Virus record (IMG/VR): IMGVR_UViG_3300037010_002844
Location: 62,001 to 126,000 of that record
Reading direction: 5' to 3' (one strand)
Length of the DNA: 64,000 nt
The notes below the pieces were generated by a model. The model did no database searches, was not told the origin of the DNA, and worked only from the letters and a program-made list of their open reading frames with translations. Below are positions 12,068 through 58,490 of this stretch, one piece after another; the stretch's first letter is position 1, and every line of letters starts with the position of its first letter. A program made the translations under genes and the position numbers.

Positions 12068-13198
12068 TTACGTGATTTCCCTCAACTTCCAGACCGTCGT
12101 CGACGCGCCAAAGTCGTCCCTCTTGACCTCGGCACAACACAGGATGAAGGGGTCAGGAAGCTCCTTGCCGCCCCAGACAGAAATCTTCGTGGCCTTGCCA
12201 GTGGGTCCAACCGCAAAGATTTGCACATATTCCTTGCCATTGCGGGTCTTCTTCTTGATGCCCGTCACCGGCTTGCCACCCTTCTTTGCAGCAACAGGGG
12301 CCGTGACAAACCAGACGACCGCCGTGTCACCGTGCTCCAGGTCGTCAATGCTATTGACGCCCTTCTTCTCCAAGGCAGCCAAGATTTCGATGTCAATCAT
12401 GGCGGTGACGTCCAAAGCACCGAAGACGTCGACCATATTTTGAGCACGTTCAGAAGACGACCAGTCCTCGATGTCAGCGTAGTCCCTGACCAACTGGTAG
12501 AAGTTCTTAAGGCCCTCGTGCGGGTCAGACTTCGGGTGTCGCTTGATCAACGCCCCGTGATCGATGTCGACCTCTTCGGTGACCTCGACGCCCTTGCGCT
12601 TCTTGGTCACGGTCTCCACGTGAGAACCGAAGAGGACCTCGTGCATGTGATGATAGTTGTTGAAGACCTTGCCTTCGCCCACGATGTCCATACTGCCGAA
12701 GGCACCGATCTTGACCAGGGCCTCCATCGCCTTCTTGTTGAACTTGCTGTGTTTCCACTCGAAGTTGTCATCCCACAGCAACTCCTCGATAGTGTTGTAG
12801 GGACGGTTGGCCATGATCTCTTCGACCGCCGAGTCGCCGACACCCTTGCAGGACGTCATCGACGGCATCAACTTCTTGCCGGGCAGCGCGGTCCACCCGA
12901 GCCCCGCCAGGTTGATGTCGATCGGGACGATCTGATAGCCCAAGGCCTTTACCTCGCTGAACGCCTTAGCACGTTGAGCAGGAGTGTGCGACATGCTTTC
13001 GAGATAGGCACACAGCCATTCCTCCTCGTGATATGTCATCAGCCAGGCGCACCAGAAGCTGTCAATGGCGTATGCCACTGCATGGCTGTTAGACGTCAGT
13101 ATCCCGTTAGCGAGATAGAACTGGTGATCCGGGTGATCGACTTCGAGGTCATAGGTCTGGTGTCGACCCACGGGTGTGATAGACTTGATGTTACTCAT
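12068..13198 (-). CDS. dnaE: DNA polymerase III alpha fragment 8: split-intein C-part 6 (37 aa, 13088-13198) plus C-terminal extein
   Basis: YDLEV..HQFYLANGILTSN|SHAVAYA. The extein completes the DnaE motif GYGFNK|SHA and includes VPIDIN, KGVGDSAV (HhH) and an OB-like tail. Confidence 0.92.
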   Translation of the reverse strand: MSNIKSITPVGRHQTYDLEVDHPDHQFYLANGILTSNSHAVAYAIDSFWCAWLMTYHEEEWLCAYLESMSHTPAQRAKAFSEVKALGYQIVPIDINLAGLGWTALPGKKLMPSMTSCKGVGDSAVEEIMANRPYNTIEELLWDDNFEWKHSKFNKKAMEALVKIGAFGSMDIVGEGKVFNNYHHMHEVLFGSHVETVTKKRKGVEVTEEVDIDHGALIKRHPKSDPHEGLKNFYQLVRDYADIEDWSSSERAQNMVDVFGALDVTAMIDIEILAALEKKGVNSIDDLEHGDTAVVWFVTAPVAAKKGGKPVTGIKKKTRNGKEYVQIFAVGPTGKATKISVWGGKELPDPFILCCAEVKRDDFGASTTVWKLREIT

Positions 13199-13419
13199 GT
13201 GAGCAGGTCCTTCAACAGGTCTTCGATCGCTCCTGCGTTCGGTTCATCAAGCATTGCTTTAGCATACTCTTCTTCAATGTACTCGTCAGTCGGCTGGAGT
13301 TCAACCTTCGTTTCGCTTTTGCGTCGGTAACGTGCCGCGGCCCGTAACAGTTCGATCGGACTCAGACCCATGCGTTGGGCAATGTCATTCAGTGCGATTT
13401 CAAACGGCGGTCTTTTCAT
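13195..13419 (-). CDS. Small hypothetical passenger gene between the halves of intein 6
   Basis: 74-aa ORF; ATGA overlap with the start of dnaE fragment 8. Confidence 0.55.
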   Translation of the reverse strand: MKRPPFEIALNDIAQRMGLSPIELLRAAARYRRKSETKVELQPTDEYIEEEYAKAMLDEPNAGAIEDLLKDLLT

Positions 13420-14449
13420 ACGCTTTTCCTATCCGATGAACGCCAGGTCGAGGATCTTTCAGGATCTCAAAAAGCTTTTTCAAGCAATCAGGTTCGAAGC
13501 GACCGCCATCCTTGTATGAGAACTGATCGTAAGAAATTCGAATGAGTGTCCAATCATGTTTAGTGATGTAATCATCAAGCATTGCATCCATGCACTTCAC
13601 TCGTTCAAAATTATCCTCGCCTTTAATACGTGCATTAAAATGGATGATTCCATCAAATTCAACATAAATGTGTCTTGATCGATCGGCAATGTCAACTTGC
13701 TTTCTTTTAGATTTGTTTGGAAAAGCAACTGACTTGACGACCTGATTATGAACAAAATCATAACCTTCAACGTTTTTCAACAAATCAAACAACGCTAATT
13801 CCGGAATGCTATGCCAAATAGCATGTGCAGCTTTTGTGCACTTTTCGTAGAACTCATCGGGGTTCAACTCACGCCAACGGGCCAGGCGCTCAGCACGTGC
13901 CTTGAGTATCTCAGGCCGGGTTGACGTTAGTCTTGCAACGTCTGATGAACGTTTACGGGCTTCAGGTCGTCGATTAAGTTCTCCCATTAGTTCAGAGCGA
14001 CGTTTCCTCTCGCCCGGATTGCTCGTGATGGCCTCACTGACCGCACGGCCCATCTTTTCCTTGTAGGCAGTCAAATCATCACCGCGTGCCTTCGCTCGTT
14101 TGAGCCAGGCGAAATTCTGCCCACGATGCTTGAAACGCGCTGTCGAGACTTTCGATGTGATTGCGGCAGTCGGGTACGCTTTCAGGTATTCTTCTTTGCT
14201 CATACCATGCGTCCCCGACAAGTGCTTTGCCAGTGCCTTACCCGTGAAGCCACAGACTTGGCATGTGACACTCTCACTGTCACCGAGTATGAATCCTTGG
14301 CACCTAGCTTGGTGTTTTTCGTAGGCCTTCAGGTAGACGAAGAGCCTGCTACATCGGTCACAACGATGCTGAGGCCCCGTTCGGCAATCATCCACAGGGG
14401 CAACATCTCGTTTGTCTCCTTCGTCCTGAACTTGTGATCCCACGTGCAC
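13400..14449 (-). mobile_element. Free-standing homing endonuclease (C2H2 zinc fingers plus Vsr/DUF559-like nuclease); true start uncertain
   Basis: CDRC, CQVCG..HLSGTH and VDIADRSRHIYVEFDGIIHF...WTLIRI. AT-richer, and sits between IntN6 and IntC6. Confidence 0.8.
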
Positions 14450-15030
14450 TTTACCTTCTCTCCGGTCACCAACTCCACTTCTACCAAGTCTAGCTCACCG
14501 TGGTCGTGTTTTGCAACAACAGGGACGAGGATGTTTTTACCTGAATTCTCATCACGAGACATGACCAGGTCGCCGGGTTCGATGTGTTGAAGCTGCTTTG
14601 TCTCTTTGAACGTGCCGTCTGAAAAAAAGGTATTTACTGGTTCCGAAAAGTACAAACTTTTATTGAAGCCGTAGCCCGCGAAGTACAGAATCTTGTCGTA
14701 GAGGTTGTTGGCCACCTTCTCGGTATAACCGTTGGCGATGCAACCCTTGACGAACCCGTCACGGGTCTCTTGGGCTGCCTTCTTTGCCGCCTCACCGCCC
14801 GAGATGCTGCGCTTCATGATTGCGCGACGGACCTCGTCACACTTGTCCTTCGGGAAGCCGGCAGCCTTCTCGGCGAGTTCCATCACCTGTTCCTGAAAAA
14901 TTATGCAGTTATGCACGAGAAGGCCATTTGCGAAGAAGTTGTTGTTCTTCTTGACCTGGATGTCGTACACAGGCTGTGCAGGAACACGCTTGATCGCACG
15001 GATCTTGACGGGAACTACGTCAGGCATCAC
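14329..15030 (-). CDS. dnaE: DNA polymerase III alpha fragment 7: IntC5 (14908-15030) + 83-aa extein + IntN6 (14332-14658)
   Basis: VYDIQV..NNFFANGLLVHN|CIIFQEQVM...FAGYGFNK|SLYFSEPV...CTWDHKF. Confidence 0.93.
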   Translation of the reverse strand: MMPDVVPVKIRAIKRVPAQPVYDIQVKKNNNFFANGLLVHNCIIFQEQVMELAEKAAGFPKDKCDEVRRAIMKRSISGGEAAKKAAQETRDGFVKGCIANGYTEKVANNLYDKILYFAGYGFNKSLYFSEPVNTFFSDGTFKETKQLQHIEPGDLVMSRDENSGKNILVPVVAKHDHGELDLVEVELVTGEKVKCTWDHKFRTKETNEMLPLWMIAERGLSIVVTDVAGSSST

Positions 15031-15344
15031 TTACGCTCCGTTTCACGATGAGTCTGACAAACAATGTGTAATGACATTGAGCGCGACAAAGCATCACTGC
15101 CTAGAACGACTCGGCAAGGGTTGAGATTTTCCCCCACATGACGCATCCATTCTTGCAAAGCGTTGATCAATCGTTGGGCTTCGTTGAAACCCTCATGCGA
15201 GGGTGGAAACTGACAGCAACCTACCAAATCTCTAGTCCCAGGATCATATGCAATGATTCGCAAATTCCCATGAACGTTCATCTCTAGCGTTAGAGATCCA
15301 TAAACATCGTCATCGATCTCGCTAGTGTAAAGATCTGCGCTCAT
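15027..15344 (-). CDS. Hypothetical passenger gene between the halves of intein 5
   Basis: 105-aa ORF; stop overlaps the fragment 7 start. Confidence 0.55.
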   Translation of the reverse strand: MSADLYTSEIDDDVYGSLTLEMNVHGNLRIIAYDPGTRDLVGCCQFPPSHEGFNEAQRLINALQEWMRHVGENLNPCRVVLGSDALSRSMSLHIVCQTHRETERK

Positions 15345-15345
15345 A

Positions 15346-15591
15346 TCATTTTTCTTTCATGTTCAATGATGATGCGCAGAGTTGGCACACTGGTCCATCA
15401 ACACTCAAAACACGTTGACCATGGTATTCGAGCTCCATATCATTTCCGACCTCTTCATAAGCTCGAAATGTGTCGAACCAGTCGGCATACGTGAGATCAT
15501 CACGCTTTCCAAATGCCGTATGTGACTTCATCGTGTTGATAAAGTTCTTGAACGACGTAAGCAACTCCTCTTCAAAATCATCAATCTTCAT
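15346..15591 (-). CDS. Hypothetical passenger gene between the halves of intein 5
   Basis: 81-aa ORF, tightly packed with its neighbour. Confidence 0.55.
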   Translation of the reverse strand: MKIDDFEEELLTSFKNFINTMKSHTAFGKRDDLTYADWFDTFRAYEEVGNDMELEYHGQRVLSVDGPVCQLCASSLNMKEK

Positions 15592-15595
15592 GTCT

Positions 15596-15810
15596 AAATT
15601 GTCCTCAATTTGAGGTGATAGTTCAAGGCATCAGACTCCCAGACGCGGTACACCGTGAAGCCTCAAGTTCTTGTGGCAAGCGTCCATAATTGATCAAGCC
15701 TAAATTGCTTCTTCATCGCAGGTGTTAGTTCATGCTTCGCTGGGTTACTGTGCCAATAGTCGCCGTCGTACTCGATGATGAGGTTGAGTGATGGCACGAC
15801 GAAGTAGCCT
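15596..15810 (-). pseudogene. Truncated Vsr/DUF559-like homing endonuclease remnant
   Basis: Translation FVVPSLNLIIEYDGDYWHSNP...TRT*GFTVYRVWESD; N-terminus missing, in-frame TGA. Confidence 0.65.
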
Positions 15811-15814
15811 GGTT

Positions 15815-16414
15815 TCAGTACTTCATTCCCAAAATCTCGTCTTCAGACGTCAGTTCACCTGCTTGCACCCAACCACGAGGCGTCATGACAAGGTGATCTT
15901 CAGTCAAAGACAAAGTTTCTCCACCCTCCAGCTCAACCTCGATGATGTCACGTACGCCGTTTGAGGCGACAGCGACAACTTCGTCCATCTCGACGGTCTT
16001 CGTCATTTCATTGTATGACGGAAGCTTAGTTCCCACCATTCCTTGTTCAACGATTTGTCTAATGGGAACCTCACCTTGCTCAGTAAGGATATGTGTGTCA
16101 CCCGTCAAACACGAGTATGTCTTCTTCAGGATGTCGTTGACGCGGTGATCGCCCCACTCCAACTCCTTGCCGTCATTCTTCGCCTCCAAGTACAGTCGAT
16201 CGACTTTGGCGGCCAAGGGACCCGGGCGATAGATGCTGGTCAGCGTCGCGATGTCGATGATGCTCTTGGGCTTGCCTTTGACAAAGAGTCGCTGAGCGCC
16301 CTGGCCCGTGCAATTGTGAACAACGACGTCGTTAGCGACGAAATTATGATGATTTCGCACCTCGATGTCGTAGACGTGGCGCTTACCCACGCTGCGTGAT
16401 GACACAAGCTTCAA
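15815..16414 (-). CDS. dnaE: DNA polymerase III alpha fragment 6: IntC4 (16313-16414) + 67-aa extein + IntN5 (15818-16111)
   Basis: VYDIEV.NHHNFVANDVVVHN|CTGQGAQ...SIYRPGP...KKTYS|CLTGDT...LTEDHLVMTPRGW. Confidence 0.93.
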   Translation of the reverse strand: MKLVSSRSVGKRHVYDIEVRNHHNFVANDVVVHNCTGQGAQRLFVKGKPKSIIDIATLTSIYRPGPLAAKVDRLYLEAKNDGKELEWGDHRVNDILKKTYSCLTGDTHILTEQGEVPIRQIVEQGMVGTKLPSYNEMTKTVEMDEVVAVASNGVRDIIEVELEGGETLSLTEDHLVMTPRGWVQAGELTSEDEILGMKY

Positions 16415-16800
16415 GCGTCGTCTCCTTCTTTTCTAGCAACTGTAGGTCATATCCACTGACAAGTGCACACTTGAGCGTCGGATGCAACGTTACGAATGCG
16501 TCAAACTTCTCCCTAGCATCATCACGCCACCAGCCCTTGACTTCCACGTACACCCGCTTAAAGAGCTCCAACGTCGGTCATTGACGATGGAAGATCATGT
16601 ACGCCTCTCTTGTGAGCTGGATCCTGATCTCCTCCTCGCTGAAGCCCTCGTCCATGCAATGACGCCAGTTGTCATACAGGTCGACGACGCCATTCTTTCC
16701 GTTCCCGTTGCCCGCTGAGTGCAGAAAGTACAAAGGGGCGCTACGATGAGCGGAGCGCGTCCGTACAATCACATGTTGCGGAGTCGTGGGCCTGTTGCGT
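16383..16800 (-). pseudogene. Fragmented PD-(D/E)xK homing endonuclease remnant between IntN4 and IntC4
   Basis: Two short ORFs (16578..16772 and 16383..16571). The second reads VYVEVKGWWRDDAREKF, a nuclease motif III segment. Confidence 0.55.
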
Positions 16801-16856
16801 CTCTGTAAGGCGACATGGCCACGGTCGCGGCGAAACCTGCGACCAAAACGCCCGCC

Positions 16857-17333
16857 TCACGTCAATCCACGAGCTTCGTAACCACTGCTAGACCCAATCA
16901 ACTCGTCGTCTTCGGTTAGGTGCTGTGCCTCAACCCACCCGCGATTCTTCGTCAAGATGGGATGATCAGCGGTGCAGACAAGCTTCTTGCCGTCGTCGAA
17001 CACGAGCTCGATGCACTCCTTGGGTCCTTGGTCGTAAACGACGTCGACGACTGATGTGGTGAACTGCTGCTTGACTTCATCGAAGACCGTCACCTCGTCA
17101 CCGACATGGACGTCCTTGATCAACTTGTACGAGTCATCGCCCATCAGCACTGCCGTGTCCTGGTCGACGCACTGGAAGATGCCTGCCCACTTGCCTTTCT
17201 CGTAGACCTCGTAAGGTTTGGGATCGGTGAAATCAATGACGGCCGGGTGCATGTGCTGCTCGAACCAGGTCTTGATGTCATTGAATGATACCGCATTTGT
17301 ATGTGCGTCAACGTTAGCAACGACTTTTGCCAT
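16857..17333 (-). CDS. dnaE: DNA polymerase III alpha fragment 5: 54-aa extein (no IntC) + IntN4 (16860-17171)
   Basis: IDFTDPKPYEVYEKGKWAGIFQ (DnaE DDxxVY...GVFQ)|CVDQDT...CTADHPILTKNRGW. Confidence 0.9.
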   Translation of the reverse strand: MAKVVANVDAHTNAVSFNDIKTWFEQHMHPAVIDFTDPKPYEVYEKGKWAGIFQCVDQDTAVLMGDDSYKLIKDVHVGDEVTVFDEVKQQFTTSVVDVVYDQGPKECIELVFDDGKKLVCTADHPILTKNRGWVEAQHLTEDDELIGSSSGYEARGLT

Positions 17334-17351
17334 GTCTTTGTAAAGGTACTT

Positions 17352-19031
17352 TCACAGGTCCATAACGTACACCGCGTTGGAGCAACCAAAGATCTTAAAA
17401 AGCCTGTGTTCCATCGCCATCTCTTCTTGTGATGCGATCCCCGGAATCGCCCTGACAGCAAATCTATCGATACGATTTTGTCCGTCCGTCCACCAAAACC
17501 TAGGCTGCGTCATGTGATCAAATCTAAAACCAGATAGTTCATACGCCCGGCCAGTGCCACCCAACCTCATGTCACGGTATGTGATCATTTTTTGGTAACC
17601 ATGCTCACGTGACCAATCCCTGGCAGCGTTGATCAACCGCGACATGCCTCCAACGACGATGGTATCGCGGGCCGTTGAAACCCGCGCCAATTCAATTGTC
17701 TTAGATCCCCACTTAGTCTGCTGGTGCGGTTTTCGCAATGTCAATGCACAAATAATGTTTCCAGCAATGTCCTCTAGCCAGAACGAATGCGACGAAGGAG
17801 TGTTTCCATCGAGGTGATTGTTCGCCATGAACTGAGCGGTGATGGCTGGACGACCGCTGCGAAGATGTAGCTTTCGTGCCATCACGCGAGTAGCAAGACC
17901 AAGCTTTACCCTGATCATGCTTTTGATGATGTTTTTCTTTACATCATGGTGCCATTCATCGTCGAAGATATGTAGCAACGACACACCACGCTCAAGAGCG
18001 CGAGTCGACTTGTCTTGGTGATACGATGGTGGAGTACCGGTCGCCTCACTGTGCCAATAGACACCGTTGCACTCGATGGCAATCCTTCCGTTACCTGACA
18101 CGATGTCCAGCTCATAAGGCGCGATTGACTGTCTGTCGTTGGCGATGGCGTTCGAATCGAGCTTGACGAAGAAATCGAACACCTCACGATGCCAGCGAGA
18201 GAAATTAGCCGGGTAGCACGTTGAACACACCTTTCCCTTGTAAAGGACGTTAAAGGGAACAATATCAGGTACGTTACAACTGACGCATGTCACATGCACC
18301 GGTGTTGAGTATCCAGCAAACTCAAATTTTTCGATGTTCCACCTCGACCGCAGTGCATCAACTCGCCGTTCGACCTCTTCGAGAGACAACCGAAAAGGAG
18401 AGTTAGTGCCGTTCTCGATAAGGCGTTTTCTAGTCTCGATGATCGAACGTTTGATATCTTCAGAATTAGCGTTCCGAGACCAATGATTCAAGCGAACGCC
18501 TTCGCCGATCCGTTCTGATCGCCGTTTGATCCTATCGTCAGTTTCTGACGTCTGACCGTGCTGCGTCCAGTGTTTTTCTACTTGCCATTTTTCAGTCAAT
18601 GCTCGAGAGATGTTATGCGCAGCTCTTGTGATAGATTCATTATTTTCTTTAGTTTGTCCTGTTCTCCAGTGCCCGTGTTTTTTGATGAAATCACGACAAC
18701 CTTGTGCGGCCCTTCGAACCGATTCAGACGTTGTTTCTGACAGCCCCTTGTTCCATGCAGGCAATGATTTTGATTTCCGGCTAAGCGCACCTCTTACTTG
18801 AGAGTTCTTCTTGCTACAAACTCCACAGAGACGTTCATATCCCGTTTGAAAGGTCATGAACTTGACCGGCCCTGAACACTGAACGCACGGTCCAGGGTGC
18901 TCTCGAAAAAGAAGGTACGCAGCCTCCGCATTGAGCCCGTGCTTTTTAAGGAGATGTGCGCGGAGCGAATTTAGGCTAGCTTTTCGCAATGGATCATTGC
19001 ACTGTGGGCACCTCGAAGGACACGATGTCAT
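17352..19031 (-). mobile_element. Homing endonuclease: zinc finger, NUMOD3-like repeats, Vsr-like nuclease and C-terminal GNAT-like domain
   Basis: CPQC..HLLKKH, WNKGL, ELDI..IAIECNGVYWHSE, HIFDDEWH, ELARVS..VVGGMSRL..TYRD and YELSGF. Start placed at ATG 19031 (track ORF begins at 19151). Confidence 0.8.
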
Positions 19032-19851
19032 CGCCGGGCCCGAGCTCCCTCGCAAGGATGGTGCCCCTGTTGCTGGTGACGATTCGTTGGTCGCCGTAGA
19101 CGCCTCGTGTCGTTCCATCGTCGAGTTGGATCTCAAACCACCCTCTTTCATGTCGTTCCTTTTTGATGATGAGCTCGATGGCGCGCTCGATGAGCCGCAT
19201 CGTTTCTAGACCTAGGAGGTCGTACTTGATGAACTCTCCGATCTTCTCAAGGTGTTTATAATTTACGCCCTCGACCCAAGGTGACTGTGGCTCGCGGACG
19301 CCGGCCTTGCCTTTGGACGTCACCAAAGGCATCTTGTTGGGCAAATCGTCTGCAATCAGCACACCACCCGCGTGACGACCGAGACTACGATTCTGCTTGA
19401 AGAGGATCTTGATCGACTCGGCGACGACCGGGTACTTCTCAATGAAGCCGCGAAACGACGGGCTGACCGGCTGCTTACACTCTGGGCTACAGCCCTGGCA
19501 GATGGACTTCGACTCCGGGCCCTTAGGAGCCCTGCAGTGGAAGGCCATGGCCTCATCGTAGGTCAAGACGAACAGATTCTTGTCGTCGCCTTCCTTCATC
19601 GTCGCCTTACGGACCTCGTCCTCGACGGTCCGCGTGGCAGCGTTGGTCTCCTCGAATGGGATGCCGTAGAACTTGCCGATATCCTTTACAAGCGTTTTTA
19701 GTTTGAAACAGTTATAATTGCTGATGGGAACGACGTTTTCCCACCCAAAAAAGTTTCGAAGTTCATCAAGAACCTCATCTCGCCTGGCAAGATCGGTGTT
19801 GTGAACAACGACGCTCTTGTTGGACGCCAAAAATGAATGAACGACCATCAC
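18994..19851 (-). CDS. dnaE: DNA polymerase III alpha fragment 4: very short IntC3 (19798-19851) + palm extein + truncated Hint-like tail
   Basis: HSFLASNKSVVVHN|TDLARRDEV, RSLGRHAGGV and IKYDLLGL (third catalytic Asp). Ends in EIQLDDG..GDQRIVTSNRG..ARELGPGDDI. Confidence 0.9.
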   Translation of the reverse strand: MMVVHSFLASNKSVVVHNTDLARRDEVLDELRNFFGWENVVPISNYNCFKLKTLVKDIGKFYGIPFEETNAATRTVEDEVRKATMKEGDDKNLFVLTYDEAMAFHCRAPKGPESKSICQGCSPECKQPVSPSFRGFIEKYPVVAESIKILFKQNRSLGRHAGGVLIADDLPNKMPLVTSKGKAGVREPQSPWVEGVNYKHLEKIGEFIKYDLLGLETMRLIERAIELIIKKERHERGWFEIQLDDGTTRGVYGDQRIVTSNRGTILARELGPGDDIVSFEVPTVQ

Positions 19852-21570
19852 ATGAATCCTAACTCAACTACAGTTGAATTTACATGCGCTCGTTGTGGTC
19901 GAAACCACGAAACGCTACGAGCATTGAAGATCCACGAGGCACGACACAGGCGAGAAGACGCCAGGCCTCCCAAACAGGTGTCAACTTACGCGTGTCCGTG
20001 GTGTGAGGCGTCATATGACAGCGGGCGTAAGTTGACATTGCACTGCACAAAAACGCACCAAAAATCACCCGTCGTTGTGTATGAAACAAGGTACCCAGGG
20101 TGCAGGAAGACGTGCATCGATTGTTGCGACTGGGTCAGGTTCATCGATCAAGAAAAAGGATACCCCGAACGGTGTCCACGTTGTAGCCGAAAACACGCAT
20201 ACGCGTCCAAGGGCACCTCGTCATGGAACAAAGGCCTGACGAAAGACAATGACGAACGCATGTCAGCCAGTGCTGCAAACATGCGAGCTCACTACAAGGA
20301 ACACGGTCACCACAACTCCGACAAGACAAAGGAAAACAACGAAAGCCTTAAACAAAAGGCGGCAAAAATCAGCGACAGCCTGCGGAGGTATTATGCAACG
20401 CACAGCGGCTGGTCACTTGGCCTGACAAAGGATACGTCTAGCATCATTGAATCTCGCAGTAAGAAGATCAGCGCTTCGTTGAAAGGACGATTCTTTAGCG
20501 ACGTAACGCTTGAAAAAATGCGCAAGGCAAAGTTGCTGACGCACGACGAGGTACAAAAACGCCTCAAAGAAAAGCAGCTTAAACTCATTGACGAATATGT
20601 CGATACTGTCACCAAAGCGCGCATCGAATGCACGATATGTTCAACAATATTTGAGCGTTGCGTTGGCGCAGTGTTCAACAACGAGGCCAAGTGTCCCACC
20701 TGCTTTCCGCCTTGGTCAGACAAAACGAGCAGGTGGCAACAGGACGTCTACGCATTTATCCAGACGCTGGCACCTGACGCAGTCCTTAGCGATCGTAAGA
20801 CGCTCGGCGGAATGGAGCTCGACATACTCATTCCATCGCGCATGTTTGCCATCGAGTGCAATGGCCTATACTGGCACAGCGAGGCCGCCAATAGATTTGA
20901 GCACGATCACGCGGAAAAGAAGAGATTGCTGTCCCTCAAAGCCGGCGTATCGCTTTTCACGTTATTTGAGGATGAGTGGCGCGACAAACGACCGATAATC
21001 GAAAGCATGTTGCGCCATCGCCTTGGGTTTTCTACCAAAGTCGATGCGCGTAAGTTGAAAGCAGAACGCTGCGAGCCCGAAGAAGTTCGAGAATTCATCA
21101 ATCAGTGCCACCTCGACGGTCACGTGAGGGCCCAATTTGCCGTGCGATTGGTAACCTCATCGGGCGAAATCGTAGGCGCCTGCAGCCTTAGGTGGGCACG
21201 AAATGGGGCAGACAGAACGACGATTGAGATCGCTCGCCTGTGCTTCAAGCTTGGCACACATGTACGAGGCGGGGTGTCAAAATTGCTATCAAAGGCAAAA
21301 GCTATAGCAAGAGAAAACAATGCAGCGAGGTTGATGTCTTACTCAGACAATCGCTTGGGAGGAAACGGTTATGCCACCTCAGGCATGAAGTTCAACGGTA
21401 CCACAGTCGCTCGCTTCTGGTGGACTGACTTCATGCATCGTTACGACAGGTTCAAGTACCGAGCCAACAAGAAGCAAGGTCTAACAGAAAAACAGGTAGC
21501 GGAGGCTGCCGGCGTTTATCGCATCTATGGCTGTAGCAACTCTCGCTACGTCTTAGACGTCACAGCGTGA
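19837..21570 (+). mobile_element. Homing endonuclease paralogous to 17352-19031, on the opposite strand
   Basis: Two C2H2 fingers, WNKGLTK, ELDILIP..AIECNGLYWHSE, FEDEW, EIARLC..GGVSKLL and SYSDNR. Confidence 0.82.
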
Positions 21571-21872
21571 CGCTAATGTCATCGTCAAACTTTGAGGACG
21601 CATTTTCTTTGAGCCAGAAGATGGCGTCAATTGTGCGCTCGTCGGCGTCGGCGTCATCGCACGACGTAGCCCCATAGTATGGGGGCCAAATCGTGCTCAA
21701 ACCCTTTAACGCGCAGTTTGACCTGACAATCTTGAAATTCAGGATTTTCTGCAGCTCTCGTCTGAGCTATTCTTTCCAGGCCAGACACTATCACATCATC
21801 TGCTCGGCAGAATCGCCGTTGTCTGTAAGCTGCACCGCATCAACGTTGCTCGGACACGGTCCCAACTCCAGC

Positions 21873-22610
21873 TCAAATTTCATAGTTGCGCTCGCTGTGG
21901 TCTGTTCTTCTCTTAGACGCGCACCAATCGCTGCAAAAATTGTCTCCTTCGCCACACGCAAGGAACGTGCCAGGAATGACGCCCATGCAATAACCGACGT
22001 CATGTGATGGATCACCTCCACTTAGAATGGACGTATTGAACGGTACCACGTGGAATCTGTGATCGTCTTCAACAGTCAGGTCGACGTATCTAGCGTTGGA
22101 AGAGCCCCAACCACCGTGCTCGATCGATACGACCTCAACGCTGCCGCATGATGCCATCAATTCATCTCCGACCTTAAGGTCGCGGCAGTACACGATGACG
22201 CCGTCAGCTCTGACAAATTTGTGACCGGGCACCACCAAAATGTGGCCCAACGTACCATCATTGGCCCTAACTCTGACCCAGACAGCGTCCTCGAATGGCC
22301 GCAAATTTCTAGCATAGGTCGCAGTTACTGCGTGTGGCATTCCATCGCCTCCCAGGACGACGTCGCCGACAATGATGTCAACAGCTCGCTTATGAGTGCC
22401 GTCTGTCATGACGACAAGATGGTCCTCGTGGACGCAGTCGATATCAGGAGCACCAGAGTTATGTGTCAGCACCCAATCGCTATCGTTGTTGGACACCCAA
22501 AACGTATGCTGGCCTTCGACCTCGATGTCGATGAGTTCTACACTTTCATCGACAACCTCGATAGCTTCAATTTTGGCCGTGCTTGCTGATGAGATGTTGG
22601 GTTCCTGCAT
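21873..22610 (-). CDS. dnaE: DNA polymerase III alpha fragment 3: IntC2 (22458-22610) + 7-aa extein SGAPDID (22437-22457) + long IntN3
   Basis: LIDIEVEGQHTFWV..VLTHN|SGAPDID|CVHEDH...VPGHKF...DLKVGD...YVDLTVEDDHRF. Confidence 0.9.
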   Translation of the reverse strand: MQEPNISSASTAKIEAIEVVDESVELIDIEVEGQHTFWVSNNDSDWVLTHNSGAPDIDCVHEDHLVVMTDGTHKRAVDIIVGDVVLGGDGMPHAVTATYARNLRPFEDAVWVRVRANDGTLGHILVVPGHKFVRADGVIVYCRDLKVGDELMASCGSVEVVSIEHGGWGSSNARYVDLTVEDDHRFHVVPFNTSILSGGDPSHDVGYCMGVIPGTFLACGEGDNFCSDWCASKRRTDHSERNYEI

Positions 22611-23508
22611 AGTCCCTGTGCTCTAGATTGGCAATCGTATGGTACAAACCTTGTCGACGAAGTTCACCATAGAAGTCATTCATGTACACGACGTCGATGC
22701 GCTGACCAGACGCCACAACGACTTCCCGTGAACGTGCGTTTGAGTTAAGCAACTTTGAGAAACGCGATTTGCCTTCTCGCACACCTTTCAACTCCACGTA
22801 TCGGTCCTCATCACTGAACCAAAAGTCTGGAGTGTAACACTTCTCTTTGCCATCGATGACAACATGGAAAGACCTATGTTCATAGAATGGCATCTTACCG
22901 AGGTGCAAGCAATATCTGTAGTAGTCGGCTTCGAACGAGCTCTTGAAGTACGGGCTGTTTAGGATGTCGGAACGAAAACACGAGCGTCCGTTCACATGTG
23001 AAGCAACCATATCACGTGACTGTGCCTCGCGGGTGCACCGTTTGGAACAGAACCGCGGCACGTAGCTCTTCTTGGTGACGATCGGTTCGCTACAAACTTC
23101 GCATACCAACGTGTGGCGGTCAAACCTCGATGCAGCGAAACATTTGGGTGAACAGAACCTGCGATTGACGTTCTTCGTTGAGAAAGTGCCTAGACACTGT
23201 ACACATGTCAGTGTACGGAGCTCATTCTTTGTCAGCGCTTTCGCAGTGTACTTGTGCCTGCACGCATTCGAACATAGTTTTCTGTTGTTGTGACACTTTG
23301 GAACGTAGAACTCATCGCCGTACTCGACGCACGTCTTCACAAGCCTCGAGGGCATGGGAGCGTGTGACATCAGCTTCCTGTGAGCGACGGCACACTCATC
23401 AGTGCAGTACGGGCGATGGAGCCTACTACCAGAACCCTTGCAGTTGGGCTCATAGTTGAACTGAAACATAATACCACAGTGTTTACACTGTTTCTCAATG
23501 ATGCTCAT
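22567..23508 (-). mobile_element. Homing endonuclease with tandem CxxC...CSxxC zinc repeats and a PD-(D/E)xK nuclease
   Basis: At least four CxxC...CSxxC units, SSFEADY and YTPDF..RYVELKG. ATG at 23508 overlaps the fragment 2 tail. Confidence 0.82.
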
Positions 23509-23992
23509 AGTGGTACGTGTACAGCTCGTCACTCGTCGACAGCTCAGATGTATACTTCTTCACAGGTTGTCCATCAGGACCCACTGTCAACCACACATGA
23601 TTTTCAGAACACGTGAACGTAGTACCATTCACCTTCACGCGGTACGTCTTCTCATGTTTTGTGGTCATGGTGAACGTAACTTTACGGTGTGAGCCATCCT
23701 GTGAGACAACGCTGTCACCGACTTTCACGTCTCGAAGCGCGGACGACGAACCATCTGACATCAATACCTTTGTGTCTGGCGACAGACACCTGTGAACGCT
23801 AAGGAATCGCGCGAAAGGCAGGTCCCAGAACAACGGGTCCAAGTCGGTGATGTATAGGACGTAGGCGACCAGAGAGCCACCGCCCGAATTGTGGACTGCA
23901 ATACCTTCCACGTTGTAAGTGTGGCTGTTTTCCACACACAGGTCTACGACCTCACCCTTATACGGTACGACAGTCTTACTTCTGAGCTTCAT
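23495..23992 (-). CDS. dnaE: DNA polymerase III alpha fragment 2: IntC1 (23888-23992) + 33-aa extein + IntN2 (23498-23788)
   Basis: [21 protein letters not shown]|[27 protein letters not shown]|CLSPDT...CSENHVW. Confidence 0.93.
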
Positions 23993-24076
23993 GATATGCG
24001 TTCGCTCTCTTCATGTAAGCCTTGAGATCCCTGTCTAATAGACATTTGACGAGGATCAGGTAAACTTAGTTGAGTT

Positions 24077-25762
24077 TCATTCAACCTCGATTAGGTCATC
24101 ATCTTCAGTCAAGTGTTGTGCTTCAATCCACCCACGATTCTTCGTCAGAAACTTATGCTCCTTGGTGCACCTGATCTTCTTACCGTCATCAAACTCGAGT
24201 TCTAGCAGCTCCTCATCAACCTGATACCTGAAGATCTGAGTCACCATCTGATCAACACCATATGCATCCTTGATAACGTCGCCCACCTTGATGGTGCCAA
24301 TGGGAGCATGCATGCCGTCAGCCATTAGAACCCGCGTCTCAGGAACGAAACAACCGCGGGCTGGGCCGGTAAGGCACACATTGCGTGCCAGCTCCATGAT
24401 CTTCTGGTAGGAAATGAAGTAGTCAGAGTTTTTCATCACCTTAATGACGCCGAGTTCCTCCTTGAGGCGCGCGATATACTCTGGCTTGTCTTGAAGACCA
24501 CGCTTCACCATGCCCACCTTACAAAGCGAGATGAGGTGATTGAACGAGGTCGTGCCTTCGGGCACCAACAACCTCGTCGGAAACTTGGGCGAACGATCGG
24601 GTGGAATCTCCCCGATGACACTGTGTGCGATATCGTGAGTCCGCTCAATGGCGTCACAGACGACTTCATCGTCATACCAGTCGGTGCCTTCCTTGGAGCG
24701 CTGGTACTCATCCCACATCTGTTGGGCGTTCTTCGGATAGAGCTCACACTTCAGCTCATCCTTCGACTTCGGAATCGCGTCAGGATTGATCTCCTGGTAG
24801 TTCATCCAACCCAGGCGCTTGTAGAGCTCACGGTCCTTCCAACGATCGGGATTATAGTAGTGAGCATCGCCGGTGACGATCAGCTGCTTGTTGAGCCCAT
24901 TGCGACGAGCGAACTCCAGGATCGCGCGGTTGACGAGGTTCTGCGCCGGTAGGCGATTGAACTGCAGCTCGAGGAAGTAGTTTCCTTCGCCGACTGCATC
25001 GACCATGTGCTGGTAGGTATTGCCCACCGCGACAACGCATTTCTCGAGCAGCACAGGGTCACTGAGCAACCGTGCGTCGAGCTCGTCAAACTTGTACTGT
25101 TGGATTTCCTGGAATATGGAGTACGCCGGCATGCCGCCGATACAAGCGCTGCTGACGATGATGTCGCCGCCTTTGGCTGCCTCTTTGAGGACAGCATGGT
25201 CAATGCGCGGGAACTTGTAGAAGCCCTTCAAGAATCCCTTCGAACATGCTGCGAAGATCGCCAACAGGCCCTTCTGGTTCTTGGGCAGAATGACTAGGTG
25301 ATGCCGTCGGTTGACGGGATTGAAGTGTTTGGTCGATTTGGACTCTTCCTCGTTTTCGACAGTCAAGGCGTTGGACATCTCAATGTCCTCAGTCTCATCA
25401 TTTTCATCGATGGTGGCGATGATCTTGGTCTGCAGCTTTTCCTGCTCCTTAGCAAGCTTGGCCGCAACCCTCCTGTCTCCCTTCGCCTGCTCTGCGAGTT
25501 CGACGTCCTTCTTCCATTGCTCCAGGTCGGGATGGTAGTACGCCTCGACGCCGGGAATGTACTTGAACGACTTTCCCTTATTGGCCTTGGCCCACTCCTC
25601 GACCCACAGTTGAGCGTGGGCATAGGAGTTCATGTTCCCGTGCTCGGTGATGGCATGGCCATCGAGCCCGTTCTCCATGCACCACTTGAAGTGTTCATCG
25701 GGATAGCCCAAACCATCGAAGGGCGCATTACGAGAAGCCCGTGTGGTTGTGCAAACCGACAA
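24077..25762 (-). CDS. dnaE: DNA polymerase III alpha fragment 1: PHP domain to GPARG + IntN1 (24080-24352)
   Basis: PFDG, AITEHGNM, PGVEAY, HLVILPKN, SACIGG, YFLELQ, TGDAHY, RLKEEL..I, DYF and TGPARG|CFVPET...CTKEHKFLTKNRGW. The first 13 aa of the track ORF are probably off-frame. Confidence 0.92.
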   Translation of the reverse strand: MSVCTTTRASRNAPFDGLGYPDEHFKWCMENGLDGHAITEHGNMNSYAHAQLWVEEWAKANKGKSFKYIPGVEAYYHPDLEQWKKDVELAEQAKGDRRVAAKLAKEQEKLQTKIIATIDENDETEDIEMSNALTVENEEESKSTKHFNPVNRRHHLVILPKNQKGLLAIFAACSKGFLKGFYKFPRIDHAVLKEAAKGGDIIVSSACIGGMPAYSIFQEIQQYKFDELDARLLSDPVLLEKCVVAVGNTYQHMVDAVGEGNYFLELQFNRLPAQNLVNRAILEFARRNGLNKQLIVTGDAHYYNPDRWKDRELYKRLGWMNYQEINPDAIPKSKDELKCELYPKNAQQMWDEYQRSKEGTDWYDDEVVCDAIERTHDIAHSVIGEIPPDRSPKFPTRLLVPEGTTSFNHLISLCKVGMVKRGLQDKPEYIARLKEELGVIKVMKNSDYFISYQKIMELARNVCLTGPARGCFVPETRVLMADGMHAPIGTIKVGDVIKDAYGVDQMVTQIFRYQVDEELLELEFDDGKKIRCTKEHKFLTKNRGWIEAQHLTEDDDLIEVE

Positions 25763-25820
25763 ATCGTCGGGGCACTCGCACCGAGCTTCCCTTGGCGTCC
25801 TCCTTTCCTTGCTGCGTCAT
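25728..25820 (-). CDS. dnaE: True N-terminal 30 aa of DnaE (FVGLHNHTGFS), cut off from fragment 1 by a 7-nt insertion containing TAA
   Basis: ATG 25820 overlaps the upstream stop. Removing TAATGCG (25724-25730) restores the canonical PHP motif HxHTxFSxxDG. Confidence 0.8.
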   Translation of the reverse strand: MTQQGKEDAKGSSVRVPRRFVGLHNHTGFS

Positions 25821-26175
25821 TTACCTTCCCACCTTACCTTGTCACGGTACTGTAGACCCAATTGACGGTACTGGACACCGTCAATGACCACGATAGTCAC
25901 TTCAGGAAACTTGATTCGCATCAGTGCAAGCTGATAGCACGCCTTGTCAGACCACCTTCCCTTAATTTCGTAGTACACGCTTTCATCGTGAACGAAAATC
26001 TGGTGTGTACCAAGCCGGCCATGTCGGCGATCTGCGGCAACGTGGCCATACCAATGGGTATCAGCACGCGGAGCCACTTGGGCAGCTTGTTCCAGGTGGG
26101 CTTCAGCTGGGTGACGAGCTATGAAACAACGATGCAACCAGCGGCAACCTCGGCAGCAATGTCTGCAAGAACCAT
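25817..26175 (-). pseudogene. Decayed segment: membrane-protein remnant followed by a frameshifted PD-(D/E)xK endonuclease remnant
   Basis: MVLADIAAEVAAGCIVVS*LVTQLKPTWNKLPKWLRVL, and YTPDF slipping in a T run into VHDESVYYEIKG. Confidence 0.5.
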
Positions 26176-46404: not shown

Positions 46405-49400
46405 TCACCCGCATTTGCTGTTTCCGCAGTTCATGCAAGTAACGCATCCCTGCTGATAGGCGAGCGACGTCGAGGCACAGATCGGGCAACACTTTTCCTG
46501 CGTTGCCTTGGTCCCATCCACGATGTAGTGCTTGCTCAACGTTCGCGCGATAACCGTCGAGAACGAGAACAGATCGCTGTGCTTGTCCTTGCGGAGCTGC
46601 TCGACGACAAGGTGAACTGGTACTCCATGTCGAAGTGTCATCGACAAGGTTCGAGTGTGCGCTCCGTACAACGGATTGTCGAAGAGGTTGACAATGTCCT
46701 TATAGAGAAGGAAATTGTCGTCCAGGTCGACGCGGAGGTTGTACGTGGACACCCCGTCAGCGTTCTTGCCGTTCTTGATGAGGACGCCCTTCTTGGCCTT
46801 CCTCGGGACTTCAACCTGTTCTGACAGTCCGGCGAACAGCTCGTAAGGCTTGCCGTTCATGAGGCCCACGAAGACCAGGTACTTCTCACCCTTGATCGAA
46901 ACGTGGTGAATGTCACACTCCAGCTCCTTCGGACGCTTCAGAGAGTGAGACTCGGCGATATTCTTGGGTTGGTCCGCCGCTGTCTTCTTCTCGTCCTTGA
47001 TGAGGACGCCATCACGAGAACCATCTCGATAGATGGTGACGCCCTTGCAACCAGTCTCCCAACCGCGCATGTAGATCTGCTTCACCACATCGACCGGCGT
47101 GTCACTCGGAATGTTGGTGGTGTTCGAGATGGAGTGACAGACCCACTTCTGAGCTGCGGCCTGGACGTCGATCTTCTTGACCCAGTCGATGTCATTCGAC
47201 GTGGCACCGAAGTAAGGCGACTTTTCCACGTCGGTCTCACCAGTGACGTCCATCCACTTCTTGAATCCGTGGTGATAGACCGTGTACTCCTGCCACTTGT
47301 CGCCCATGGCGTCAACGAAGTCGACACGAGCATCCAAGTCATTCGGATTGATCTTCTTCCTTCGCTTGTAGCTCAGGAGGAAGGCGGGCTCGCAGCCAGA
47401 TGTAGTCTGGGTCAAGATGGAGACAGAGCCAGCTGGCGCTGTCGTCGTCAAGGCGATGTTGCGACGTCCATAGAGACGATACTGATCACGGAGCTCATGA
47501 TCAGCGTCCATCACTTGTTCAATGAAAGGATGTCCCTCTTCCACCTTGTGGGAAAAAATCGGGAAGGGACCACGATCACGTGCCATCTCAACAGTCGAGC
47601 GGTAGGCACCCAACGCGAGGCCCTTATAGATCTGCTCAGTGACGTTGATAGACTCGTCCGAACCGTACTTGATGTTGAGGTAGGCCAAGGCATCGCCCAA
47701 GGCAGTGATGCCCAAGCCGGTGCGACGACCATTGATTGCAGTGTTGCGGATCTTGGTCCATAGCTCGATTTCGGGCCGCTTCACGTCAGCGGGCTCAGGG
47801 TCATTCTCGATCTTCTGCATGATTCGATCAATGGCCTCGAGCTCCAGGTCGACGAGATCGTCCATCAACTTCTGCGCCTTCTTAACAACATCGTTGAAGC
47901 GCACGAAGTCAAAACTGGCGTGAGGAGTAAATGGATCTCTGACGAAGCGAGCGAGGTTGACGAGAAGCAAACGACATGAATCGTAAGGCGACAGCGTAAT
48001 CTCACCGCATTGTTCGCTAGCGATTATTACGTTTGCTTGATTTTGGAACTGTACAAGCTTTTCGTCACCAACATACATGCACAGTGTGTGCTCTCCGTCG
48101 ACAGTGCCGTTGTACACGTCTTCGACACCCGCGGGTTCAACGCTGATCACGCGGTGATTGTGCAATGCCGCGGCCTCTTTCAGGGCAGACCAGGACGCAA
48201 AACCGTTTTTGGTACCGATTCGTGCCGGCACATCCAAGCGTCGACATTCGGCAACCCACTCTCTTCCCAAGGGCTCTCTACCCAACGTAAACCTAAGTGA
48301 GGTAAAGGCGTCAAGTTGCTGTTTTCGCGTTACTTCTGCACGATCAGCGTGAAGCTTCTTCAGGTTCTCTGCCCGTGCAACGTTCTTATTGGCCTTCCTG
48401 TTTGCGTAGAGGTTGGAACACGAATGTGAGCAGAATGCCTGTTCACGTCGGCAGTACGGCAGCGCGAACATTTCGTTGCACCACTCACACGTCCGGTTGA
48501 CGTACAGCTCACCGTCGATCACATCGACATCATAACCTTCTTCAAGGGCCTGAACGTACGTACGTTGAATCCTCGTGTCGAGTTCTGGTGTTGAGATGTC
48601 GACCTCTCGAGCCGCCCAGCACGACAGGTCGTAGAAGCTTCCCAGCTCGCTGCGACGCCAGGCCGAAAACGACATCGGCAGCGACCGTTGTTTAGCGTAA
48701 GCGTACCACTCGTTCAGTGAAACGCGGCGGCCGAGCGACCGGGTCAACCCCAGCACGTGTTGGCGGATGTCATCATTGGTGACGTTGTCATAGGCACGCG
48801 GATTGTTGGCCCCACCGACGCTCTCGCTCATCTTCGCCGAATATTCAGCAAACTTGCCAGCGACTTTATGAGCAACCCAAAGTTGATCGCCATTCAACAG
48901 CTCGTCGACTCGCTTCCGGGATCCGTCACGCATGATCATCGTGTGGTTTCCGGTGGCCTTAAAAGTGTGACCTCCCTCAATGGTCACCTTGAACACAGGA
49001 ACTCCCTTACCGGTAAGCCTAGGATTCCTCATCAGGCGGATGCCAATTTTTCCTGTGGCCTCCTGGTAACAATAGACCGGCAAGTCCTTGCCTTCGTCAG
49101 CTAGCTGCTTGATGGGCACGTAACCCCTTCCGTCAGCGACGGCGATAAGAGTTTCTCCCGTAATGCACGGGTTGGTGCTCGTCGAGCCGTAACCAAACGC
49201 AGCGTAGGCATCTGCTGGCCCGCGGCGCAGGACAGTGTCCCAGAACAGCAAACCGGGTTCAGCAGATTCCCATGCTGCCTGGATGATCTCATGCCACAGT
49301 TGGCGAGCGTCTACCTGTTCCTCGACGATGTGAGGAACGTCTTTGTCAACTGGAAACCGCAGTTGAACCTGCGTACCCGCCTTAACGGCGTTCATGAACT

Positions 49401-52600: not shown

Positions 52601-53520
52601 ATGCCTACCAAGATCGTCATACCGCCAGAGAACATCAATGAGATGCGTAATTTGTTCTGTTCTGGCGCCAGCATCCCAGAGCTCATGCTAAAGTACGGTC
52701 TCTCACGGAACAAGGTCACTGCTACCCTTCAAAACGCTCTGGGCGAGGAATACACGACATATGCTCAGAAGATCATCGCCGGTTGTGCTGTAAAATCTGC
52801 TGACAAACGGCGTGGGCGCAAACAAAACCGAACTCCGAAGTGGAACGCTAAAATCGCTGATGCAAATCGAGGAAAGAAACGATTAGAAGAGACAAAAGCT
52901 AAGATCAGCGAAGCATCACGCACACGCTTCGAGCGTGGCACCTGGTCGAAAGAAAAACACATTGAGGCTATGAAGAAGGCCGTACAAACCAAGCGTAAGA
53001 ACGGCTACTTTCAGTTTCATTCACAGCGTCATTCTGAGTAGACGAAGGAACACACACCGATGCGTGGTAAGAAAATGTCAGATGAGGCGTGGCAAAAGAT
53101 GCGTAAAGCAAAAACGCTTTTTTGAACTGGGTGGTGAGCCCTCGCACTTAGATCGCATCATTCCTGCACATGAATGTCAAAAACATAGTGAAAATACCAA
53201 GCGCATGTGTGCAAATGGCAAATTTTCATACGGCGACGGTTCTGTAATGCGTAGTAAGCTCGAAAAACGTATCTACGATCAAGCGCTCACCGTCTTTCCA
53301 GACGCTCAACACTCACGTTGGCTCACTGTCAATGACACCACGTACGTCTTCGACATCTTCATCCCATCGATCAAGACGTTCATCGAAGTCAATGGGAACT
53401 ATTGGCACCTTAACTCACGGATCTACGAGGCCACACACACCACGACGCATACCGTGATGTGATGGCTTCAGAGATCTGGGAACGAGACGCTGTAAAACGT
53501 CACGTCGCTGAATCTCAAGG
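52601..53520 (+). pseudogene. Disrupted homing endonuclease (HTH + NUMOD3-like + Vsr/DUF559)
   Basis: TAG at 53039-41, then PMRGKKMS and a slip in an A run; downstream SKLEKR, FDIFIP..FIEVNGNYWH and a further frameshift before RD..K..GY. Confidence 0.7.
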
Positions 53521-58452: not shown

Positions 58453-58490
58453 GAGCAAATCGTAACTCGCAAAAGGCCACGATTACACGG

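Follow-up and report, generated by a model that had tools for sequence, protein, structure and literature searches.

A viral DNA stretch of 64,000 nucleotides (nt), here called the window, carries a dnaE gene, coding for the alpha subunit of a C-family DNA polymerase, that is interrupted by six naturally split inteins. The window belongs to the 309-kb viral contig IMGVR_UViG_3300037010_002844, the source of which we read as an uncultured jumbo phage. Our best explanation, to which we assign a probability of roughly 85%, is that repeated endonuclease invasion left this DnaE cut by six split inteins and maturing into two chains, which probably dock through the relic of a further intein, with a probable ribosomal hop near the 5′ end of the gene. 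An initial annotation, made from the sequence alone, had proposed the six split inteins, and the proposal is supported by related loci with empty sites and contiguous alleles, by recurrence of the interruptions and by purifying selection. The degenerate seventh intein, the atypical split of intein 3 and the stop-containing gap near the 5′ end were absent from that annotation.

DnaE pieces and their junctions

Stop-to-stop translation of the region 12068–25820 yielded eight open reading frames (ORFs) with DnaE sequence (pieces A, B, D, E, G, H, I and K), all on the minus strand, as is every feature given below with window coordinates unless stated otherwise. Searches against profile models placed the pieces in DnaE order—PHP; DNA_pol3_alpha 2–66, 57–107 and 110–260; DNA_pol3_finger 49–114 and 113–161; HHH_6 (Pfam)—with Hint or intein model matches at the ORF ends, as the initial annotation had foreseen. 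The pieces thus ordered comprise the PHP domain, the palm with its PDxD aspartates (PDID, in extein D), the fingers and a helix–hairpin–helix (HhH) region. At each of six junctions, an intein N-half is followed by a stop and then by an adjacent co-oriented ORF that starts with an intein C-half; cutting the ORFs at the motifs named in the initial annotation gave six N-halves of 91–187 amino acids (aa) and six C-halves of 18–51 aa. All eight annotated ORFs are present, but the fourth (E) ends in a degenerate half.

In the amino-terminal chain (N-chain), extein A (24353–25723) contains the PHP domain and the start of the palm, ends in GPARG and is 69–80% identical to its relatives (Pfam PHP and DNA_pol3_alpha 2–66); its listed ORF spans 24077–25762 and starts at an overlapping TTG. 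Extein B (23789–23887; 33 aa, SGGGS...FLSVHR) tiles on residues 476–508 of the related locus L005 (DNA_pol3_alpha 57–107), extein D (22437–22457) consists of the seven residues SGAPDID, and extein E (19159–19797; approximately 213 aa) provides the palm and part of the thumb, with 82% identity to L005 (DNA_pol3_alpha 110–260). The carboxy-terminal chain (C-chain) is made up of extein G (17172–17285; 38 aa with GIFQ at its end; 68% identity to L005 residues 783–820), two finger segments—extein H (16112–16312; 67 aa; DNA_pol3_finger 49–114) and extein I (14659–14907; 83 aa, ending in GYGFNK, 99% identical to L072; DNA_pol3_finger 113–161)—and extein K (12071–13087; 339 aa), which holds the HhH region and the C-terminal part of DnaE (HHH_6) and tiles on L005 residues 923–1263. 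The listed ORFs add up to chains of 777 and 543 aa, where the initial annotation gave about 790 and 540 aa; the N-chain would reach about 782 aa if the leader described below is joined.

The exactness of the junctions became evident from related contigs. In two of these, L003 and L005, DnaE is encoded without interruption as a protein of about 1210–1260 aa, onto which the exteins of the window map back to back without loss, and the interval between exteins B and E in uninterrupted homologues is exactly 21 nt, that is, the seven residues of SGAPDID. Because the exteins tile residue for residue on uninterrupted homologues, the arrangement is far beyond chance, and at the level of sequence the related contigs settle that the junctions are true excision points. 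Every junction quoted in the initial annotation (GPARG/SGGGS, SVHR/SGAPDID/TDL, GIFQ/CTG, KTYS/CIIFQEQ and GFNK/SHA) was found.

Six class-1 split inteins

Each intein begins directly after its N-extein with a nucleophile, Cys in inteins 1–5 and Ser in intein 6, and each ends in Asn (HN in five, SN in intein 6), as first annotated; the +1 residues of inteins 1–6 are S, S, T, C, C and S. None of the six lacks the block B His (TKEH, SENH, VPGH, TADH, TEDH and TWDH), whereas the TxxH motif that had been ascribed to them is literal in four only: intein 2 has Ser for the Thr, and intein 3 has Val-Pro. The intein halves match the Pfam models Hint, Intein_splicing, Hom_end_hint and PT-HINT, mostly below the gathering threshold, since each half holds only part of the domain, and phmmer matched them to the solved Npu and Ssp DnaE, NrdJ-1, gp41-1 and Spl DnaX inteins. 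By these motifs and by predicted fold, the six elements are class-1 split inteins of the HINT superfamily.

Intein 1 consists of an N-half of 91 aa (24080–24352) and a C-half of 35 aa (23888–23992), with same-site homologues in L035, L072, L157 and L158. Intein 2 (N-half, 97 aa, 23498–23788; C-half, 51 aa, 22458–22610) has same-site homologues in L051 (also split), L127, L145, L157 and L158. The C-half of intein 4 (34 aa, 16313–16414; N-half, 104 aa, 16860–17171) matches Intein_splicing positions 132–155 and that of intein 5 (41 aa, 14908–15030; N-half, 98 aa, 15818–16111) positions 117–155; same-site homologues occur in L072 and L073 for intein 4 and in L002, L004, L034, L072 and L073 for intein 5. 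Intein 6 (N-half, 109 aa, 14332–14658; C-half, 37 aa, 13088–13198) recurs in L072, L073 and L159, its C-half with 92% identity in L072 and L073. L142 and L110 carry, at sites 2 and 4 respectively, contiguous mini-inteins of approximately 140 aa that are homologous to the split ones of the window.

The N-halves of inteins 1 and 4 are 48% identical overall, and in the docking stretch at their C-terminal end about 19 of 21 residues agree; judged by sequence, the two inteins are paralogues. Recent gene conversion between them was ruled out, as their DNA identity over this stretch is just 71%.

In intein 3, the split lies near the C terminus. Its N-half (187 aa, 21876–22436; Pfam PT-HINT, 35.8 bits) covers almost the whole HINT fold and includes its own block F, and its C-half (19798–19851; HSFL...VVVHN) has only 17–18 aa; the H-x-F part of block F is duplicated and overlaps in both halves. 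Same-site homologues are found in L072, L076, L111, L157 and L158, and the short C-half layout is shared by L072, L076, L111, L158 and the L157/L159 contig. The N-half was modelled with AlphaFold from a six-sequence alignment; the model has block-mean predicted local distance difference test (pLDDT) values of 75–93 over roughly residues 1–130, and Foldseek matched it to the complete mini-inteins Msm DnaB, MchDnaB-1 and gp41-1 with target-normalised template-modelling (TM) scores of 0.71–0.78. The N-half also carries a Cys-rich tail of about 50 aa (21876–22028), with four Cys in zinc-ribbon-like spacing and low confidence in the model; this tail is present in some homologues (P0060 and P0062) and absent from L072.

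Endonuclease genes and their remnants

Every gap of the locus contains an endonuclease gene or the 3′ remnant of one. Four genes are intact, in inteins 2 (C), 3 (X) and 6 (J) and in the break between the two chains (F), and all four match PHROG families of phage homing endonucleases. Gene C (22570–23532; 321 aa) overlaps both adjoining ORFs, has counterparts at the corresponding position in L051 and L157 and carries a PD...ELK motif; it looks like a PD-(D/E)xK enzyme of a type other than Vsr-like, and a sequence search against solved structures gave no match for it. Gene X (19837–21567, plus strand; 577 aa; phrog_3339 ‘homing endonuclease’, E = 3.5 × 10−59) lies opposite to the dnaE pieces, and its homologue in L072, 59% identical, is likewise inverted. 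Gene F (17355–19151; 599 aa; phrog_3339, E = 1 × 10−59), with same-place homologues in L073 and L157, is 32% identical to X, and both match Pfam MTES_1575 below cut-off. Gene J (13403–14449; 349 aa) combines a zinc finger (Pfam ROS_MUCR) with a nuclease; the top Foldseek matches of its AlphaFold model are to Escherichia coli Vsr (1vsr/1cw0; probability 0.91–0.93, with weak E-values of 0.03–0.07).

The gaps of inteins 1, 4 and 5 hold 3′ remnants of genes whose intact counterparts occupy these positions in relatives: 23955–24047 (61% identity to the last 31 aa of the L035 endonuclease), 16386–16577 (52% identity to the last 60 aa of that of L072) and 15597–15803 (61% identity to the last 69 aa of that of L004), respectively. 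ORFs overlap by 4–158 nt at many boundaries of the locus. Small ORFs accompany two of the inteins. One of 74 aa (13198–13419), its stop overlapping the start of piece K, lies in the intein 6 gap, and two of 81 and 105 aa (15030–15591), neither with a Pfam or PHROG family match, lie in that of intein 5. The 81-aa ORF (15349–15591) is 78–87% identical in L004 (13535–13771) and L072 (10652–10888), a conservation in two diverged relatives that exceeds that of the adjoining endonuclease remnant.

A probable relic of a seventh intein between the two chains

Piece E continues for 54 aa after its last DnaE-homologous residues in a beta-rich tail (18997–19158), which is overlapped by gene F over 158 nt and contains no active intein half, and in piece G a head of 16 aa (17286–17333; MAKVVANV...) precedes the return of DnaE homology. 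Such tails (44–54 aa) and heads (13–16 aa) are common to 17 distinct lineages, with or without an intervening endonuclease gene. Comparison of the tail profile with an intein N-half profile (hhalign) gave a probability of 96% (E = 4.7 × 10−9), the match being limited to the C-terminal half, residues 47–88 of the intein 1 N-half. All catalytic blocks are missing from the relic: there is no block A and no Cys1, and the tail reads YGDQ where TxxH would be expected. The heads look like the first strand of an intein C-half, with blocks F and G absent. On the basis of these profile and motif comparisons, we read the chain break as a seventh split intein that has lost catalysis and kept its docking segments. 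The relic may still dock the two chains non-covalently, with the head as docking strand.

Recurrence in relatives and selection

The same seven positions are interrupted repeatedly, in varying combinations, in related loci. We scored the junctions of approximately 150 such loci with 30-residue anchors on both sides, using seven junction classes, one of which covers both adjacent sites of inteins 2 and 3. Among the fully scorable loci, none of the classes is interrupted in 25, one in 19, two in 4, three in 3, four in 2 and five in 1, and the window has all seven breaks when sites 2 and 3 are counted separately. L072 has five split inteins and a single chain, the L157/L159 contig four split inteins plus the relic, and L073 three plus the relic. 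Multi-fractured dnaE genes are a common feature of the clade: relatives have 2 to 5 split inteins, and six is the maximum of the sample; the locus is the extreme of a family and not unique. Layouts of single pieces recur as well. Dozens of proteins share the doubly flanked arrangement of piece H (C-half, 67-aa extein, N-half), and a search with piece D retrieved four further proteins with a 7-residue extein between intein halves (P0063, P0064, P0066 and P0067). In some relatives, the dnaE pieces are separated by 3–8 kb blocks of unrelated genes, among them genes for a peptide deformylase and a DnaJ-like protein as well as numerous small ORFs (L073, 10569–13302; L158, 9109–10852 and 11920–17138; L157/L159, between D and E and after F), so the pieces need not stay adjacent.

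Between the window and L072, the proportion of synonymous differences (pS) is 0.37–0.83, near saturation, and that of nonsynonymous differences (pN) is 0.05–0.25 in every intein half and 0.005–0.32 in the exteins (0.32 in extein K). Low pN at near-saturated pS indicates that exteins and intein halves are under purifying selection. In addition, the assembly of a second sample (3300036715) contains a contig that agrees with the locus over 11.2 kb apart from a single mismatch (99.99% identity). Selection and the second assembly together are evidence against a pseudogene and against misassembly.

A stop-containing gap near the 5′ end

The first 17 codons of dnaE (25731–25781), from the GTG start at 25781 to a Ser codon, TCG, at 25731, include the HxH motif of the PHP domain (HNHT) and lie in a frame that differs from that of the rest of piece A. 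After TCG come the seven nucleotides TAATGCG (25724–25730), the first codon of which is a stop, and the gene then continues with PFDGLG in another frame. The leader codons are contiguous with the gene in L003–L006. At least 10 distinct alleles (the window, L002, L007, L010, L072, L082, L093, L097, L128 and L129) have a gap of 7–16 nt at the identical codon, and in all of them the gap begins with a stop, a Ser TCN take-off codon being followed at once by TAA, TAG or TGA. The last triplet of the gap matches the take-off codon at two or more of three positions in 10 of 10 alleles and is itself TCN in 6 of 10. The cut-off leader is under purifying selection among gap-bearing alleles (pooled pS 0.76 against pN 0.15), and alleles that are in frame lack a start codon downstream of the stops. 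An endonuclease gene lies just upstream in 7 of the 9 gap alleles with upstream sequence; the window keeps only its 3′ end (25820–26008; 53% identity to the C-terminal 64 aa of the upstream endonuclease of L002, which is intact at 271 aa). The most economical reading of this pattern is that a short ribosomal hop probably crosses the gap, which we regard as a candidate; the peptide HNHTGFSPFDGLGYPDEHFK would be the mark of a hop product made from leader and gene.

Proposed mechanism and rival explanations

In the mechanism that we propose, dnaE would have been invaded repeatedly by homing-endonuclease cassettes residing in inteins, and the locus would be expressed as eight polypeptides, a ribosome hop probably crossing the 7-nt stop-led gap between the first 17 codons and the remainder. 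Each N-half would find its own C-half, fold with it into a HINT domain and carry out class-1 protein splicing: an acyl shift at Cys1 or Ser1, transfer to the +1 residue (Ser, Thr or Cys), cyclisation of the Asn and peptide-bond formation. Three such reactions would join A, B, D and E to an N-chain of about 780 aa, the PDxD active site of which would be built from the 7-residue extein, and three more would join G, H, I and K to the 543-aa C-chain. The two chains would stay unligated and meet at the catalytically dead split-intein relic, probably by non-covalent docking. We infer that all six inteins splice and presumably do so orthogonally. Orthogonality of the three reactions per chain, as first annotated, would indeed be required, but their order would not. 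A stronger statement—that one polymerase needs three layers of repair (a programmed hop at codon 18, six orthogonal trans-splicing reactions and the relic as a non-covalent dimerisation module), each the scar of an endonuclease invasion—is one that we consider more doubtful than not.

Several observations weigh against parts of this explanation. Intein 3 has Val-Pro for the block B Thr as well as the overlapping H-x-F duplicate, and intein 6 has no penultimate His. The match in the docking stretch makes cross-reaction between inteins 1 and 4 possible, and theirs the likeliest pair for it. Relic tails are under constraint, though to a lesser degree than active inteins (pN/pS of about 0.5). At the 5′ gap, the landing triplet of the window, GCG, matches the take-off TCG at only two of three positions, and RNA folding around the gap found no structure beyond that of shuffled sequences (z-scores −1.5 to +0.9), so we do not claim a stem–loop like that of phage T4 gene 60. 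Finally, a 408-aa ORF with a family-A DNA polymerase domain (57232–58458) lies in the same window; this DnaE therefore need not be the sole polymerase, and its replicative role is presumptive.

One rival explanation is that only some of the six inteins splice and the others, most plausibly intein 3 or the HN-less intein 6, hold their pieces together non-covalently. The non-canonical VPGH and 17–18-aa C-half of intein 3 and the SN end of intein 6 would fit this, and the relic shows that the lineage tolerates an unligated junction. However, Cys1 or Ser1, the block B His, the terminal Asn and the +1 nucleophile are kept in all six inteins and in diverged homologues, whereas the relic has lost all of them, and a 187-aa domain left beside the catalytic aspartates would probably hinder the active site. 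We thus consider partial splicing unlikely.

A decaying pseudogene, riddled by endonuclease insertions while the phage replicates with another polymerase, would account for seven interruptions and a stop-containing gap near the 5′ end, and the family-A polymerase domain ORF would supply a substitute. This is very improbable given the selection on exteins and intein halves noted above, to which the constraint on the leader adds; no piece has an internal stop or frameshift, the catalytic motifs are intact and multi-piece layouts persist in several diverged genomes. The notion that the stops and gaps are assembly or sequencing artefacts draws on the fact that the source is a metagenome-assembled contig, and we give it next to no credence: the independent assembly from the other sample reproduces the locus, the piece H protein occurs on 5 contigs, the inserts are 0.5–4 kb of coding sequence (intein halves and endonuclease genes) and not point errors, and homologous interruptions exist in dozens of unrelated assemblies.

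Genomic setting

Besides dnaE, the window codes for a DnaB-like helicase, a UvsX-like recombinase, a ribonucleotide reductase, a 5′–3′ exonuclease and the family-A polymerase domain protein; no transfer RNA genes were found in it. The large subunit of the ribonucleotide reductase (1213 aa, 46405–50046) contains a contiguous intein of about 350 aa (roughly 48088–49134; Pfam Intein_splicing spans residues 305–653 of the subunit). On the plus strand, a short stretch at approximately 53247–53429 resembles the C-terminal parts of the endonucleases in inteins 4 and 5 of relatives and may represent, away from dnaE, another endonuclease gene or what is left of one. Scans for promoters and terminators yielded counts near those of shuffled controls and hence no information on transcription units.

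The virus has no cultured relative, as a megablast search of the dnaE locus against phage isolates gave no match and a protein search of phage isolates returned only DnaE proteins at 31% identity or less, none of them close. Among species-representative genomes of bacteria and archaea, a scan detected no relative of this DnaE and therefore neither a host clue nor a prophage copy.

Comparison with known systems

The closest precedent is the fractured genes of ocean metagenomes, in which a free-standing homing-endonuclease gene lies between the halves of a split intein; three of these are DnaE loci, with one split intein each and, in one case, also the C-half of a second (PMC2677866). The window shares with them adjacent same-strand gene parts with an intein half on each and a free-standing endonuclease ORF between them that often overlaps its neighbours; loss of this endonuclease in some cases, so that the halves are then adjacent; DnaE as host; and a viral or metagenomic source. 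The endonucleases of fractured genes are Vsr-like (or GIY-YIG), a type to which gene J of the window bears a weak structural resemblance. It differs in having six split inteins and a dead seventh where the published loci have one each, an inverted endonuclease gene (X), a 7-residue extein and an intein split near its C terminus. In the open-access literature, we found no natural gene for which more than one or two split inteins are described, an absence that is not proof. The initial annotation knew of no gene with six; the arrangement itself has been known since 2009 (PMC2677866).

The cyanobacterial Ssp and Npu DnaE inteins (PMC2677866; PDB 1zd7 and 4kl5) are likewise naturally split class-1 inteins in a polymerase III alpha subunit, and their N-halves match those of the window by sequence. 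In contrast to the inteins of the window, each is single, sits at another insertion point, is encoded at distant loci in a cellular genome and has no endonuclease gene, and the sequence similarity is only remote (E = 1 × 10−6 to 1 × 10−2).

For intein 3, a mechanism is made plausible by engineered split inteins, which splice with C-halves of 15 residues (PMC2664965) or 6 residues (‘S11’; PMC3620165). In these as in intein 3, a long N-half forms about the whole HINT fold and the C-half gives the last strand and the terminal Asn. The engineered inteins are laboratory-made, whereas intein 3 is natural, recurs in six contigs and has a short H-x-F overlap in both halves. Intein 6, with Ser at positions 1 and +1, is akin to the cysteine-less split inteins, which are described as rare (PMC11923092). 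Side-by-side work without cross-reaction, as the six inteins of the window would need, is known from a laboratory panel of 15 split-intein pairs that are mutually orthogonal (PMC7090010), whereas the predicted orthogonality of the window set would have been naturally selected for one protein in one cell.

The 5′ gap resembles the bypass of T4 gene 60 (10.1101/2022.08.31.505936; PMC7026636) in the stop right after the take-off codon, the matching or near-matching landing codon, the location in a replication gene and the adjacent endonuclease gene in most cases. It differs in length (7–16 nt against 50 nt), in host gene (dnaE against a topoisomerase gene) and in that no conserved hairpin was found, whereas gene 60 has a take-off stem–loop and a signal in the nascent peptide; by gap length, host gene and folding scores, the dnaE gap is therefore not a member of the gene 60 family, and we regard the two as analogous and not homologous.

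Implications

New here are the six split inteins, a catalytic extein of 7 residues, an intein with a naturally short C-half, the dead relic and the 5′ gap. The hop of 7–16 nt, if true, would be a new short class of natural bypass. Naturally split inteins are workhorses of protein ligation and orthogonal sets are laborious to assemble in the laboratory (PMC7090010). The locus and its relatives offer six pairs that have apparently been tuned by evolution to act together on one essential protein, including two rare types, one with catalytic Ser at positions 1 and +1 and one with a natural C-half short enough to synthesise. The locus also shows the extent to which selfish endonuclease cassettes can fragment an essential gene while rescue at the protein level would keep its function. 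All stages of this cycle are represented in the clade, from empty sites through contiguous mini-inteins and split inteins accompanied by endonuclease genes to endonuclease remnants and a dead relic; the relic suggests that intein halves may be reused as docking modules.

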